Source of the DNA: Utricularia gibba
Taxonomy: Eukaryota; Plantae; Magnoliophyta
Assembly (NCBI GenBank): GCA_002189035.1
Contig: NEEC01000012.1
Coordinates: 2,170,001-2,234,000 of the forward strand
DNA length: 64,000 nt
Direction: 5' to 3'
Positions 5,541 to 14,529 of this stretch are shown in pieces. The notes below the pieces were generated by a model. The model had not been told where the DNA came from. It was given only the letters and a program-made list of their open reading frames with translations, and ran no database searches. The position numbers and the translations under genes were made by a program. Positions within the stretch are counted from its first letter, which is position 1. Every line of letters starts with the position of its first letter.

Positions 5541-8015
5541 CTATCTTCTGATTCTTCTCTGCCGATGCCTGTCGCTTATACTGCTCATGCCTATTCCTAA
5601 TGATGTAGAGAAAACAGCTAATTTAATGCCCCTGGCCTCCGCAACACTGCGAATTCTTTGTGCATCTTGCACAAAGCCACCAGCTTCAAGTGAAGTAATA
5701 ATCCTGTAAAACTCTTCAGACTCCAGTTGATCGATTCTTGACTCAATGACTCCCAAGGCTTGGAGGGCCTTCTTTTCATTCCCAGTCCTAGAGTACATGT
5801 CACAAAGGCTAATATGGAGCTTAAATGGTGGTGCATCGCCGAGTGCAGCAATGTTATCCAGCAGCTGTTCAGCTTCATCAAAGAGCTCCAACCTAGTAAG
5901 CCAATCTACAAAAGTTGTGTAAGTAAGAACCCCAGTTAAAAAGCCATCATTCTCAAGCTCCAATAGGAGATTCAAGGCCTTGTCTAATAAATTATTCTTC
6001 TGGTACGCGGATATCATAGTTGAGATGCACTTATCATCTGGCCTAAGTCCAAGCGTTCTCATATAATCAAAATTACGCCTGGCGTTTTCTGGGTCACCAA
6101 GTCTTGCATACACCTCAACCATCAGTGTACAAGATTCTAGAGTTGGTTGAATGCCAACAAATTGCATTGTGGTGGATATTCTATCAGCTCCAACTGCATC
6201 TCCACGATGAGCAAAGGACTGCAACAAGGCAATATATATCTCACTTGTAACCTGCAAGTCGTTGTTTTCCATTTCTCTCATCAAAGTCTCACCAAGTTGT
6301 GGACGACCAGCACGTGCGTAGGCCATGATCATAGAGGTGTACACTTTCGTGTCTGGCTGAAATCCCTTCGCCCGTAAGCTCTCAAACTCTTCCTTTGCTC
6401 GATCTAGATTCCCAGATGCACAATACATCTGCATTGCAATAATTGATGTGATAACGTCTGGAAGAATGCCATTGTCAACCATTTTCTTCAGAATTCTTTC
6501 AGCATCTTCGATCCTATTTTCTTTTGCGAGGGCATCAGCTAATTTTGAGTAGTCATGGGTGGTTGCTTTGAAGGACTCCTCAGTTACTGCATATTCTGAA
6601 ATCTACACAATAAGTCAAAAACTATCAACTTACCGCCTGATGTAGAGAAGAAACATAATCAGAAGCTTGGCATACTGAAAGACAAAAACATGCATTTTCA
6701 AAATTACATTTGTTAATACCTAAAGACTTTTTGAATGGCTCATTTAATGTTGCAAATATACTTAAAAGGTTAGCATTAAAAGAAGATTGTTTTTTTACTA
6801 ACATCAGTAGTACCTGAGAAAGAATACTTTTTAGACAGTAAGAATTGACATTCTACAAAATACCTTAAAATATAGCCTGGAATTAGAAACTTTCAATTCA
6901 TCCAGAAGCGCTATCCAATCATTCCGGCTAGGCTGTAGAAGGGCAATCCATTCGGCTAACAGTGGCGCAGGATCATCCTCTTCCAGCGAAGACATGATCT
7001 TACTGGTAACAAGCTTGCATTTACCAGAAATCATCTTTGGACTCTGAGGCCAAACATCCTCAACATTTTCATGAATTTTATTGGCTACTGCAGCCCATTC
7101 AGGGCGAGATAAATCAAGCCCATAAATCTTATACTTGAGGCTTCCATGCCTCTTTGGGAGGCTGTCAATTCTTGCTTTACCTTCACCAACCCCAAAATCA
7201 TTTTCCATGCCCTTTGATCCAAGAGTTTCCTTTTGTAAATGCACCTTTTCATGGGATTTCATCTCCATATTCTCCTTTCTGATTTTCTCTAGATTCTCAT
7301 AAAACTCACTTTCCTCCATCTTTTCCCGAGCCCACTTAAACCTAAGCTCTCTCAGCAAGTCACCACGAATGCCGATTTGGCCAGCAATCCTGTACATCTC
7401 CTTAACTTCCTCGGACTGAAGAAAGGTTTTCATGTTCTCTTTTTTCTTCTCCTTATCCATATCCTGAAGAACCTGATTGCTTGTTTCCCATACAGTCTCC
7501 CATAAATCTACACTGAAATCCTTCGGATGCTCAGAAATATCAGCGCCCATCAATCGCTCCAAACCACCCTTTTCCAGCTCTGAAACAACCTTCTCAACGA
7601 TAATCACGAGCATCCCATCGATAGCATTCTTCTCAGAGCCAGGAAATGCATCATTGAGCCTTTTCCTCATAATCCAAACAAAACGCGACAAGAAGTCATT
7701 CGTAGTTCCGTCATGTTTAATCTCGCCTCCTACACTGCTCGATGATGCATCATTACCAAATTGCTGCACGGAATGAACATGTCTACCGAAATGCTTCAGA
7801 AATTGGAAGTCTTTAACAACATGGAGTGAAGGCAGGCCATAAAAACATCTTATAGGTGGCTGAAACAAAGAAGTTGTAGATACGGTGCTATTTCCAACAC
7901 ACTGGAAACAAGAAAAGCGCGATAACAAAAACCCACTTCTGATCACTGATGTATTCACAACACCTGATCTGCTAACCAAGCGCCTCAAATTTATCATCCC
8001 TCCTCCCCCACACAT
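5541..8015 (-). CDS. NFD5: Mitochondrial-type PPR protein, NUCLEAR FUSION DEFECTIVE 5-like (2 exons)
   Basis: Exons 8015-6864 and 6602-5541. The N-terminal half carries the NFD5 signatures FLSRFVWIMR, AGQIGIRGDLLRELRFKWAREKM and LKYKIYGLDLS. The C-terminal exon is a P-type PPR tract (e.g. FQPDTKVYTSMIMAYARAG). Confidence 0.88.
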
Positions 8016-8260: not shown

Positions 8261-8627
8261 TTCGCGACCCATTCTACAGAGTCCAGGCCTGCACTTGCCC
8301 TTCATTAACTAAACCAGCCAGAAACCGTCCAAATTCTACTCAAGTTGTTTCTCAGTGGTTTTATTTATTTAATTAATAAAATATAAATTTTAAAATTTTT
8401 TAAAGAAATTACAAGACTATTTTATTAAAAACATTTCTCAAAAACTGTTTATGAAAAAAAAAAGGGCAAAAAAACCTGATTAACAATGGATATATTAAAC
8501 AGTTTTAGTAGGGGGCTCTTAATACACAAACATAGAAATTTCGAATATCGTTTATGATACACATGAATCTACTAATGCAAGCCTCCATCACTAAGTAAAT
8601 CCACAGCAGTAGCCAAGGAAGGAGTTA

Positions 8628-8820
8628 ATAAACCAGAAGACACCCACATTTCATGTTACAGTTCTCGCTTGGGATGGGCTTTCAGTATCCCAGGGAGAGG
8701 AGAGGAGCCAGGGATTGTACCTAAAGCAGAAGACACCCACATTTCATGTTAAAGTTCTAGCTTGGGATGGGATTTCAGTACCCTCGGGAGAGAGGAGAGG
8801 AGAGGAGACAGGCATTGTAC
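8628..8820. repeat. Tandem duplication at the DP 3' end: copy A 8721-8820 (100 nt) and copy B 8628-8720 (93 nt)
   Basis: The copies align directly with about 9-10 substitutions and a 7-nt expansion of a CT-rich tract in copy A. Confidence 0.95.
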
Positions 8821-11109
8821 CTAGTGAGGCATTTGGCTGAGGTGATCTGGGGTAGTGTTGATCTGGCCGGATGGTGGACTTGTCTCCAACGGCTGGATTG
8901 GCCGGAATCTTTTCTGCATCCGTCTGTGGTGTCTCACAGAATTTCATCGCCTTGAGAACGTAGTTATCATCATGCAGCTCAAAGGGAGTGCTGCAAAGAG
9001 GTAGAGTGATAAAGGTTGACCCGAAGGTTGCTAAGGTGCAAACAAAGTGCTCCAGACTCAAGCTTAGTGTCCTGAGAGTTTTGTGTACACAAGTCTAGTG
9101 TTTGAACTCTCTAGCATACCTGTTGAAATCAAAGTGAACTAGTTGCATATCTTCTGAGATCTCTACCTCCACAGTAGCATGAGGACGAGTCTGCAGATTT
9201 AAAGAGTTGGATCAGGAAATCCATCCATGCCAAATCATGCAATAAGTACAGCAAAATCAACCTGAACTAAAATAAAAGGCAGTGCAACTCCACCAGACGG
9301 AGCGTTTCCTGATCCATATAACTTCTCATTGCGTGCAATGAGGTTTTGGAGACCAATGTACTGCAAGTGGGACCGATGTTTCATGACAAATGACAAGCTT
9401 GAGAAATAGAGACAGCCCTTGAGAAGTCTTAACCTGTTGCTCTAGCTCTTCCAGATATGCTGCCTTCTTTTCTATGCGGTTTCGAAGTGCAATGGTTTCA
9501 TTCTGGGGATCAAGTTTACAATAGAAAAGGGAGGAGAAGCTGTTCTTCGATTATTCAACAAAAATGGCCAGAAGAAGGCATGCATGTAAACAAAATTAAA
9601 CAAAAGTCTACCTTTAATTCATCGATGTCGTTCAAGCTAGTACAGGGAAGACCTTTCCACTGTATTTCCTTCTTATCTTTGGAGATTATATCCATGGCCA
9701 TTAGGACATTAAGAGCATCATACACCCGCCGCCGTATATTTTTCTCATCATATTGTTGCTGTTGAAAGTATAATGGGATCAAGAAGAGTTTTTCAGTCCC
9801 ACGACTACAATGCATGAATAAACAATTTTTTAACACACATCCAAAATTAACCTGATCTGGAGCAAGACTATTGCTAGGATCAGCAAATTCAGCAACGAGT
9901 TCATCTGCCACCTGAAAGGATTTTACTCAGGGCAAACAAGATTTGAAGCACACATCTGGTGAATAGAGGCTTAGCTTTCATGTACCTCATTATATGTTGT
10001 CCTTCCCTTGCTTTCAACTTTCTTGCATACTACCACAAGAACAAAAATAGATGATAAAATGCAACTGATATTGAAAGCAAAGCCATTCTTACAATCTCTA
10101 CTACGAAGTACACCACTCAATACATATCTAAGTAGGTAGAGAGAACATGCCTTTCATGCTGAACTGGCGGAGCCCTCGACCACTCTTGTCACCTCCTGTT
10201 GCACGTTGCCCTCTCTTCTTCCTGTTGCTGCTCCATTGAATATATATTGCTTGATGAGAATAAAGTTTCAAAGGACAGTTTGTAAAAAAACTGTTGAAGA
10301 GTACTAAATATCCAACCAGGCAAAAGTGTTCTTAGATTACCATTAGAAGTTATGCTAGTTGTTTTAGGAGTAGAAAACAACCCTTCGCAGCCAACTAATT
10401 CACAACGCAATGCAGAAACTAGGGTACTATTTCTTCGCCTGTTATAGCTCCTTACTCTAAATTTATGCCCCTCAATAAGCCATAGCCCCAAAGAACACCT
10501 TGCTTTTTTCAAAAGAATTGAAGAAAAAGGAACAATGACAAACAAAATCCGGTTTCACTCTAAAATATGCCATTGGGACAAAGCATAGCTGCTAAAGAAT
10601 TTTAAGCTACTTTCAACATTAAACTTTCAAATACATAAATTCTGATAAATCATTCCCAAAAGCCCCTCAACAGTCGGACATTTTGAGTTTCTGCAGGAGT
10701 CAATCTATAACATCAAATCTACAAAAACAAAACCCTTCAGTTCTTGAAAATTTGCTGAACCCATGTAACGCAAACAAGGATCTTGAGGTAGCATAAATTG
10801 AACCCGTTACAAAGAATGTGAATTAAGGTATTATGCTCACCCAGTTGTCCCCTGTGACCCTGCATCGTCCCCTTGAATATCAAAATTGCTCAACTGATGG
10901 AGTGTACTGTCACTAGCAGCAGCAGCCGTCGCCACCTCACTCCGGCTGGACGGAGATCCAACGCTGCCGCTGGTAGACATAGATTGGCCCGATACAGTGG
11001 TGCCCCATGACCTGGCAGCTCCATTGGCATCCACTCTAGAACCTCTTGATGGGTTTTTCTTATCCCCTTCTTCGTGATTAACCTTTCCATTCAGCCCGCG
11101 ATTCACCAT
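8656..11109 (-). CDS. DPB: E2F dimerization partner transcription factor (DPB-like), multi-exon
   Basis: Spliced exons give [108 protein letters not shown]. The stop is at 8656 if the 8820-8721 intron is spliced and at 8744 if it is retained. Confidence 0.93.
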
Positions 11110-11855
11110 AGTCAGAGCAAACCCAGAGAACCCACAAAACTGATAACTTTTAGAAAACTATCCAGTTTCCGAAAGATCAACACCAACCAACGAAGTCTCA
11201 CAGGCACCAATAAGTCAACCTGGTTGCATAATCCCTCCGACAAAAAAAGACCCAATTCCTGAAACTGAATTCTTCTATTAAATAATCGGGTTCGCCGGAA
11301 AACCAACAATCAACTAAACAGGATCTTCACTGCACTCCGATGATACAGATGGCGCCACCCTCAGGGCAGACCCAAATGATCAGAATCACAATACCAAGAA
11401 GAGAAGGGAGGCAACGCGAAGCCGAGAAGTGGGATTGTCGATTATGAGAACTGACACGTAGAAGGATGAATCGCGGTAAAACTTTCAGCATCCAAAGCTC
11501 AAAGGAAGAAACAATTCACGAATATTTTTGTAGGGTTTTTATATTACTGCAATTTAGTCACTGAAATTACAATATTTGTAGGATAAATTATTAATTCCAG
11601 TTAATCAATAAAGATAGAACTTAAAAGGAAATATTATATACATTTTAAGGCCGCTACTTTAAATTGTTAATTTAATATTTAAAAAGTTGTATTTAGTAAA
11701 AGATAAATATTATGTTGTATTATACTTGTCAACATTACATGAAGCATTTAGTAATATATTTTAATTAATTATATAATTCAATTATTTTTATTAAAACATA
11801 TTATATGATTAAGATTAAAATAATATTACATTTAACGAATATACTTAAAATAGAC

Positions 11856-11875
11856 ATATATATATATATATATAT
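11856..11875. repeat. (AT)n microsatellite
   Basis: Run of alternating AT in an AT-rich intergenic spacer. Confidence 0.9.
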
Positions 11876-12022
11876 TATCCAATCAAAATTTTGATTAAAA
11901 AAGTATTAATAGAATAATTATAAAAAATATAGTTATAAAAATTATATAAATATATTACAAATTTCAAATATATTTTAAATTATAGGATGATATTTGATAA
12001 TATAGTATAAAAGATTTATATC

Positions 12023-12025
<3 letters not shown>

Positions 12026-12053
<28 letters not shown>
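12026..12053. repeat. (AT)n microsatellite
   Basis: Run of about 14 AT units. Confidence 0.9.
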
Positions 12054-12321: not shown

Positions 12322-14529
12322 TCACTCCAGCAGTCTGGCTAGGGGAGACTTCCTAAATGCATCTGTTCTTGCCAAAAGACCAGCAAGTGGTCTACTGATG
12401 GGCACACCATCACCTTTTAGTCTCTCCCGGAATCCATATGCTGGCTGCTGCGCATTGTCATACGCATGGAGGAGCGATAAGTATGGCCGGGCACGGGAAG
12501 CATAACCAGCTTGCCTCATGTTAAGAAAGATCTTCTCTGAGTTATGAATGTCTCCTCTCCTTGAGTACTCATCCAAGATGGTGAAGAAGGATGAGAAGAA
12601 TGGTTTCCCTATTCTCCTTCTGATAGCATTCTGTAGGATGGAGTCAGCCTTTTCGACTTCTCCAGCTTTCACATAGAGCTTGACGATCACATCCACAACA
12701 TTGGGTCCCTCATTAGCACTACTTGTAGACATTTTCATGACAAGATCTTTTCCTTTATCCAGCATTTTATGATCTGCATATACTTTCAATAGAAAAACAT
12801 AGTATTTTGAAGCAAGCTTCTTTGAGATTTTTGTCAACTTTTCGAAAGCTAATTCTGCATCTTCAATTCTTTTGAGTTTTCCCCAAGCTTCGATAGCAGT
12901 GATGCACTCTTGTAGTCTTGGATTATGTTGGCATAGATTCCAGAGTCTGGCAACTTCTTCTTCCCTACCAAGGGAAGCATATAATGGAAGTAGTAAGTGA
13001 GAAACCAAACGCATTTTCCCTTCAGCCCCTCCTTCAATTTCCCTTAGTATTGACTCGGCTTTATCATTTAGCCCACCAGCAATATAGTATCGCGCCAAAG
13101 CTGCATTCAAGTTGTTGCTAGGTTCAATACCTTCGGATTTCATTCTTTCAACAAGCTGTTCCATGCCAGTGATATCAATAGCCTGGCCTTTAAGATCAAC
13201 CAGCACCCGATAAGTAAAGGTAGATCGTTTCACATTTTCTTTCTCCATTAATGACAAAATATCATCAACTTTCTTCCAATTCGTCTTCTTATACAGCAAA
13301 AGCATCTGGTTGCATGAAAAACATGAAAGCGGGAATAATTTTTTCATCTTGCTAAACAACTTTTCAGCCTTTTCTGTGTCACATCTAAAGACCATGTTTG
13401 CCAAGAGACTAAAATACACCCTTTCCCCTCTATAATGTTCAGGAATTGTCTGAATATACTCCTCGGCCTTAGAAATACCACGCACTTTTGCAACTAAATC
13501 AACATGGGAAGCATAATTGTTTTCATGAAATTCCATATGCTTTGCAGACTGCATCCACTCTGAAAGCTGCAAATCATTAATCAGTAAGAAAAAATGAAAT
13601 CTTCAAAATTCAAAGGGAAAGATATACAGACTGCTTCGTGTAAAAATTGGAAAACAACACACACCTGCAAGGCCTTGTCAAACATTTGTCGTTTCCGAAG
13701 CTGGATCATTGTTACCAATGCTTCAGTCATTGTCACTTCATTTCCTTCTTCAACCCATTTATCTAAAATCTTGTTTACAGGTGATCCAACAGAAGTGAAT
13801 ATGGCCCTGATAATTCCTGAGGGAGCCTGAGCTGAAGTTTTGTGAAAATCATCTACAAGATTAGTTTCAGCATCTATGCTTTCTGTAACATTTTCCGAGT
13901 CACTAAGATCATCTTCATTTAGTTCCAGATGAGACTCAACCGTATCAGCAACTTCATAATCAGAATCCACATATGAATCAAACGATCTGTTGGTATCATG
14001 CAAGCCACCCATCAAGTTATCATCATCTTGCTCCACACAGCTCTTACCACCAACATTTGAAGAAAAAGAACGAAAACCTTTGTGTGGACTAGAAGAGATA
14101 CATGATAGGCGAAAAAACCAGGTTGCACCAACCAACTGTGTCACCAGTTCCCCTCGAGAATCCACAACTCCATCACCATAAACTCCCATGTACCTTCTTC
14201 CTATCTCTGAAGTCACATAGAAGAATTGCTTGGTCTCTAAACTTGATACTGGAGTCCTGTGGCAAAGAACTGAGACCCATCTTCAAAATACAAAAACCAG
14301 GAATCTAAAACTGAATGTACACTTAAATAATGCCTCGAAATACAAAAGAACAGAGCTACCACACTGGCTCAGTCCGCATTCAAGTTATACAACCAACAAC
14401 AACCTTCGTAAACACAATGGAAAGAAAAAGGTGTAGGCAAAAGAACACATTCTCCATTTATCAACCAGCAATTCGGACGAGGAAATACCATTACCTTAGC
14501 CGAATCGAAGCTCTTCTGATCGCCCACAT
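12322..14529 (-). CDS. P-class mitochondrial PPR protein (PPR596/At1g80270-like), 3 exons
   Basis: A 35-nt first exon at 14529-14495 (MWAIRRASIRL, AG|GTAATG). Exon 2 runs ~14256-13665, with an alternative in-frame acceptor 24 nt upstream, and includes an acidic linker and KWVEEG...LRKRQMFDKALQ. Exon 3 runs 13566-12322 (LSEWMQS...YASHVDLVAKVRG plus PPR repeats). Confidence 0.88.

Follow-up and report, generated by a model that had tools for sequence, protein, structure and literature searches.

Intron gain by tandem duplication is an established mechanism, with 188 events from Arabidopsis, rice, animals and Cryptococcus listed in a 2012 review (PMC3443670), so that the first-pass annotation of the locus described here overstated its rarity in calling it rarely documented. 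Individually dissected plant cases are nonetheless few, and the sequence from which a recently gained intron arose is in most cases untraceable (PMC4974935). In the Rogers model, as at this locus, the intron equals one repeat unit, its GT comes from the upstream AGGT and its AG from the downstream AGGT, and the ancestral coding sequence is kept (a 'precise' gain). The vertebrate ATP2A1 intron (Hellsten et al. 2011, PMC3265369) likewise results from splicing of a duplicated AGGT-containing coding segment that leaves the peptide unchanged; that gain took place in the ancestral lineage of jawed vertebrates, and its re-enactment in cells gave 6–16% splicing (PMC3265369). The potato RdRp intron (Ma, Lan and Niu 2016, PMC4974935) is, like ours, a plant gain by tandem duplication dated by relatives that lack the intron. 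In the fission-yeast SPOG_01682 and SOCG_00815 introns (Zhu and Niu 2013), going by the account in the paper that cites them (PMC4974935), tandem exonic AGGT copies are spliced out, again as here.

In this study, we describe a comparable intron in Utricularia gibba, at the 3′ end of a gene for DP, the DPB-type E2F dimerisation partner. The gene lies in the window, by which we mean the whole 64,000-nt stretch of DNA that was analysed. Our reading, to which we give a probability of roughly 0.88, is that the upstream copy of a tandem-duplicated segment of the last DP exon became a spliced intron in this Lamiales lineage. The features on which the argument draws are given below in the order of transcription.

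8477..11250, minus strand: DP gene (DPB-type E2F dimerisation partner), ten exons, start codon at 11109, transcript extending past 11250
10840-10228, minus strand: older DP intron, from RNA contigs
10150-10030, minus strand: older DP intron, the second, GC-AG (plus-strand ends CT..GC), from RNA contigs of three runs
9985-9912, minus strand: older DP intron, from RNA contigs
9851-9759, minus strand: older DP intron, from RNA contigs
9611-9503, minus strand: older DP intron, from RNA contigs
9433-9361, minus strand: older DP intron, from RNA contigs
9261-9191, minus strand: older DP intron, from RNA contigs
9119-8991, minus strand: older DP intron, from RNA contigs
8821..8990, minus strand: exon 9, upstream part of the former last exon, ending ...TCA CTA G; RNA contig pieces 8816-8990 (runs X1, X3, X6) and 8816-8914 plus 8915-8990 (run X10)
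8820-8721 (8721..8820), minus strand: copy A, the probable new intron of 100 nt, with GT at 8820-8819 and AG at 8722-8721
8799-8793, minus strand: 7-nt CT-tract insertion in copy A, placed by single-gap alignment, which shifts the old reading frame
8752-8748, minus strand: TTAAC branch-point-like motif from a motif scan, 28 nt before the acceptor, overlapping the old stop TAA of copy A at 8751-8749
8746-8744, minus strand: TGA stop of the hypothetical intron-retained reading, with no supporting RNA contig
8720-8628, minus strand: copy B, 93 nt, opening the last exon with 62 coding nt, followed by the stop TAA (8658-8656) and the initial 28 nt of 3′ UTR
8477..8655, minus strand: 3′ UTR, with RNA contig ends at 8477, 8496 and 8515

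The identity of the gene is clear from its product. Translations of the exons match the Pfam families E2F_TDP (PF02319, 45.7 bits) and then DP (PF08781, 28 and 26.9 bits), all over the curated cut-offs, and the joined protein is 72–78% identical over ~350 residues to its best 30 matches among the fetched angiosperm DPB proteins, which include those of Sesamum, Coffea and Paulownia. The eight older introns are confirmed by RNA, with GT-AG ends (CT..AC on the plus strand) and a single GC-AG exception. No DP paralogue was found in the window. In run X3, additional contigs differ from DP exons by 12 and 4 letters (at 9262-9363 and 10864-10960), which suggests that a DP paralogue is expressed from another place in the genome; the 3′ end of that paralogue could reveal the state before the duplication.

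The surroundings of the gene can be described briefly. A mitochondrial PPR gene of the PPR596-like (At1g80270) type occupies 12322-14000 on the minus strand, upstream of DP at a distance of ~1.2 kb. The best matches to it, at most 62% identical, are all from Lamiales, which places the genome on a long branch within that order, with no near annotated relative in the collections searched. PPR and DPB homologues have locus tags 5–10 apart in Paulownia, Rehmannia and Penstemon and share one contig in Sesamum radiatum and in S. angolense, which indicates that this neighbourhood is old. The spacer between the PPR and DP genes is very AT-rich and carries (AT)n microsatellites (11850-12050). On the other side, ~460 nt beyond the end of the DP transcript, there is an ATG-started reading frame of 394 aa on the minus strand (6831-8015) with no Pfam match.

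Copies A and B were found by a direct-repeat search and pairwise alignment and directly adjoin on the minus strand, where the sequence reads ...GCC TCA CTA G|GTACAATGCC...CTGCTTTAG|GTACAATCCC...; the boundary preceding copy A is CTAG|GTACAAT and that preceding copy B is TTAG|GTACAAT. The direct-repeat search returned two families that represent one pair (76 nt at 88% identity with a spacing of 93, and 30 nt at 93% with a spacing of 100), while Tandem Repeats Finder at a minimum score of 30 reported a GAGAG tract only and not the A/B pair. The single-gap alignment has 83 matches and 10 mismatches besides the 7-nt gap, so that the copies are still 89% alike in the genome; their longest common exact run is 25 nt, and the unit's edge is given by the final mismatch (G at 8721, T at 8628). 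At the breakpoints there is a microhomology of 2 nt (TA), the left flank being CAC, the unit start TAGGTAC... and the right flank TATTAAC, which makes it ambiguous whether the AG lies inside the unit. Further copies of the unit were searched for in the window and none was found; a mobile or dispersed repeat was rejected as its source on this ground.

The donor of copy A, GTACAA, agrees poorly with the plant consensus, and the A+T content of the copy, 52.0%, is the lowest among the nine introns of the gene. Two of its differences from copy B fall within putative splicing signals. In the pyrimidine tract, G at 8633 of copy B is replaced by C at 8726, a G-to-C difference that lengthens the pyrimidine run, and the first T of TTAAC, the sole YTRAY motif of the intron, goes back to a G-to-T difference at 8752. 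This motif is the putative branch point, with the predicted branch A at 8749. All sequence statements of the first-pass annotation hold: its account of 8820-8721 as a diverged tandem copy of the next 93 nt was reproduced by alignment with its coordinates and details, including the GT and AG ends, the CT expansion of 7 nt that frameshifts copy A, the C in place of G in the pyrimidine tract and an A+T content of ~52%.

The two copies have fared very differently as coding sequence. Removal of copy A gives a protein of 356 aa with the tail SPLPGILKA and a stop at 8658-8656, whereas reading through it leads, as had been stated from the sequence, to a tail ending at 8744 that lacks the PGILK motif and has no counterpart in other DPB proteins. 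PGI[LI]K occurs within the last 25 residues in 111 of 119 DPB homologues, and among 135 motif-bearing sequences 126 have it start at 12 residues from the C-terminus, exactly as PGILK does in the spliced protein. The earlier suggestion that splicing restores an LPGI-type C-terminus is thus borne out, down to the motif spacing of those 126 sequences. Copy B has kept the open frame, LPGILKA and the spacing. Copy A has been frameshifted by the insertion and has three changes in the motif (LPRVLKS in the old frame), in agreement with the relaxed constraint previously proposed for it. Decay confined to copy A, with copy B intact, indicates that copy B was the translated one over evolutionary time and hence that copy A was removed from the message. 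This evidence from frame and motif is independent of the RNA runs.

For direct evidence of splicing, RNA contigs of four runs from four studies (X1, X3, X6 and X10) were aligned to 8350-11250. In contigs of X1 (471 nt), X3 (449 nt), X6 (444 nt) and X10 (235 nt), 8715 is joined straight to 8816, the contig positions being adjacent with 0 other letters and no mismatches; the pieces run from 8477, 8496, 8515 or 8580 to 8715 and then from 8816 to 8990 (8914 in X10). Because GTACA follows both boundaries, the cut slides by 5 nt, and the joint is equivalent to removal of GT8820...AG8721, exactly 100 nt. This is the junction from 8821 to 8720 that the first-pass annotation had proposed to look for, and contigs of all four runs show it and never copy A. 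The automatic list of joints passes through a repeat filter and omits this one, which is read from the contig pieces themselves. By bin depth, 8716-8815 has no cover at all, and the eight older introns show the same lack of cover; in X1 the depth of 6.39 equals 32.6 x 19/97, i.e., the share of the bin that lies outside 8716-8815. Run X10 bears the label of another organism, and it matches at at least 99% with the same splices. Among the 31-letter words that span the junction, 20 of 31 are not in the genomic window, and the copies share no run of more than 25 nt, so the junction comes from real molecules and not from assembly collapse. An index search of seven RNA runs with words from 8716-8830 found no copy A words. 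It had been considered plausible that both spliced and retained isoforms exist; no retained isoform appears in any RNA assembly, though Logan contigs lose rare variants and could hide a minor one.

Copy A itself is present in genomic DNA from two samples, since all sampled words of 8716-8830 occur in runs X11–X14 (one sample, 2013) and X15 (a second sample, 2019), both of which may be sources of the assembly. The DNA that contains copy A and the RNA that lacks it come from different samples, which brings up a presence/absence polymorphism: the plants that supplied the RNA could carry a single-copy allele, one in which the duplication never occurred or one from which unequal recombination has deleted copy A, in which case the joint would be ordinary genomic sequence with no splicing involved, since loss of exactly one repeat unit yields the same sequence as GT-to-AG splicing. 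In keeping with such an allele, three DNA-labelled runs with the same species label (X16, X17 and X18), which may not cover the locus, contain 0 of 7 sampled words. A never-duplicated old allele would, however, be expected to differ in its flanks, and the RNA contigs, from four studies spanning 2011–2024, show 0 differences from the assembly over ~414 nt of the 3′ end and 953 nt further up, which indicates the same haplotype. A recent deletion would need a crossover within the first 7–10 identical letters, as any other would leave an A/B chimaera, whereas every diagnostic letter in the RNA, beginning with 8713, is that of copy B. A single-copy allele also leaves unexplained why copy B kept its motif and open frame while copy A decayed. 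We consider this explanation distinctly improbable.

A cDNA artefact deserves still less credence. Direct repeats are the classic setting for template switching by reverse transcriptase, and TAGGTACAAT stands at both ends of the skipped segment, so that a false deletion could be produced in this way or by collapse in the assembler. Template-switching products are usually minor species, but the skipped form is the sole assembled form in four independent runs, and copy A words occur in 0 of 7 RNA runs; a k=31 graph cannot collapse copies that share no exact 31-letter run, and the conserved frame of copy B favours real removal of copy A. We therefore regard an artefact as scarcely credible. It is less far-fetched, if still unlikely, that the intron is an alternative one, with a substantial share of transcripts keeping copy A and encoding a different DP tail, as a regulated isoform pair. 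The weak donor and the low A+T content would fit such a pair, minor variants are concealed in contigs, and the retained form, having no downstream junction, would escape nonsense-mediated decay. The zero contig cover in four runs and the lack of any sampled word in seven stand against it, as do the behaviour of the segment, which is that of the eight constitutive introns, and a retained tail without a counterpart among the other DPB proteins.

Comparison with other species supports the view that the intron is new. In Sesamum radiatum, Paulownia fortunei and Penstemon smallii, from three other Lamiales families, the last exon continues without interruption from the acceptor that precedes STPFELHDD as far as the stop codon, and self-comparison detected no tandem repeat in the last exon of these three orthologues. 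The reading frames of other angiosperms obtained at exon level, from a search with the last exon in its retained reading, are likewise unbroken (24/24; none close and none from this genome). The alignment of orthologues that had been suggested as a check thus gives one copy and no intron at the site in three Lamiales families and in 24 angiosperm frames. At the homologous Gly codon Sesamum has TCAG|GTAGA, so that it too carries a proto-splice site at this place. Since no relative of the same genus or family with a DP 3′ end was found, the gain is dated as later than the split from the other Lamiales families. A search with exon 1 yielded mostly fragments the size of an exon, at best 73% identical, and one long match of 433 aa, none of them from a close relative; the contigs of two further protein matches end before the 3′ end of the gene; and an approach through the neighbouring PPR596-like gene led to a Genlisea aurea contig whose PPR homologue is accompanied by an F-box gene and not by DP. 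The divergence of ~10% between the copies suggests an age of millions of years.

Intron gain by tandem duplication, as in the Rogers model, is supported by a tandem copy, an exonic AGGT source, removal from mRNA and absence from outgroups. A 93-nt segment of the last exon, with the last 20 codons and the stop codon of the gene plus about 28 nt of 3′ UTR, was duplicated in tandem, starting at an AG|GT inside the coding exon, at the Gly codon GGT. With AG|GT at the start of the unit, the duplication left GT opening the upstream copy and AG preceding the downstream copy, one unit apart. The spliceosome would then remove 8820-8721 as a U2-type GT-AG intron, and the spliced mRNA would retain the ancestral coding sequence, ...ASLG| followed by 20 residues from copy B. 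As a stop codon was included in the unit, translation of unspliced RNA would at first have ended at the TAA of copy A and given the same protein as spliced RNA, at no cost while splicing was inefficient. Later decay of copy A, through the frameshift and three replacements in LPGILKA, would have made splicing obligatory for the normal tail. Splicing may have been improved by two of the substitutions, G to T at 8752 and G to C at 8726, possibly under selection. A more specific proposal is a cost-free route in which the duplication could spread neutrally at any initial splicing efficiency and was later locked in by the decay of copy A, together with reshaping of the old stop region into a branch site (TGTAAC to TTTAAC). 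We put this forward tentatively, as possible rather than probable.

The DP intron is a further case of a known mechanism, set apart by a duplicated unit that includes the stop codon. Its parent and daughter sequences stand side by side, so each intron signal has an identifiable origin in what was once a codon or a UTR base. For annotation, a DP model terminated at the stop in copy A would be incorrect. Compared with the Rogers model, the AGGT lies at the very edge of the unit, with TA shared by the breakpoints and the acceptor AG coinciding with or adjoining the duplication joint; the unit reaches beyond the stop codon into the 3′ UTR, from which a third of the intron derives; and the unspliced RNA would at first have coded for the same protein. 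[quoted passage not shown] The fission-yeast introns, as they are described in the paper that cites them, consist of multiple 24-bp units, and the DP intron derives from a single 93-nt unit in a flowering plant. With respect to ATP2A1, the DP intron looks fully spliced in RNA assemblies and is described here from sequence data. Unspliced RNA is harmful in ATP2A1 but would initially have been neutral in DP, as a duplication that contains the stop codon keeps the unspliced message harmless and avoids the cost of poor splicing discussed for the vertebrate gene (PMC3265369).
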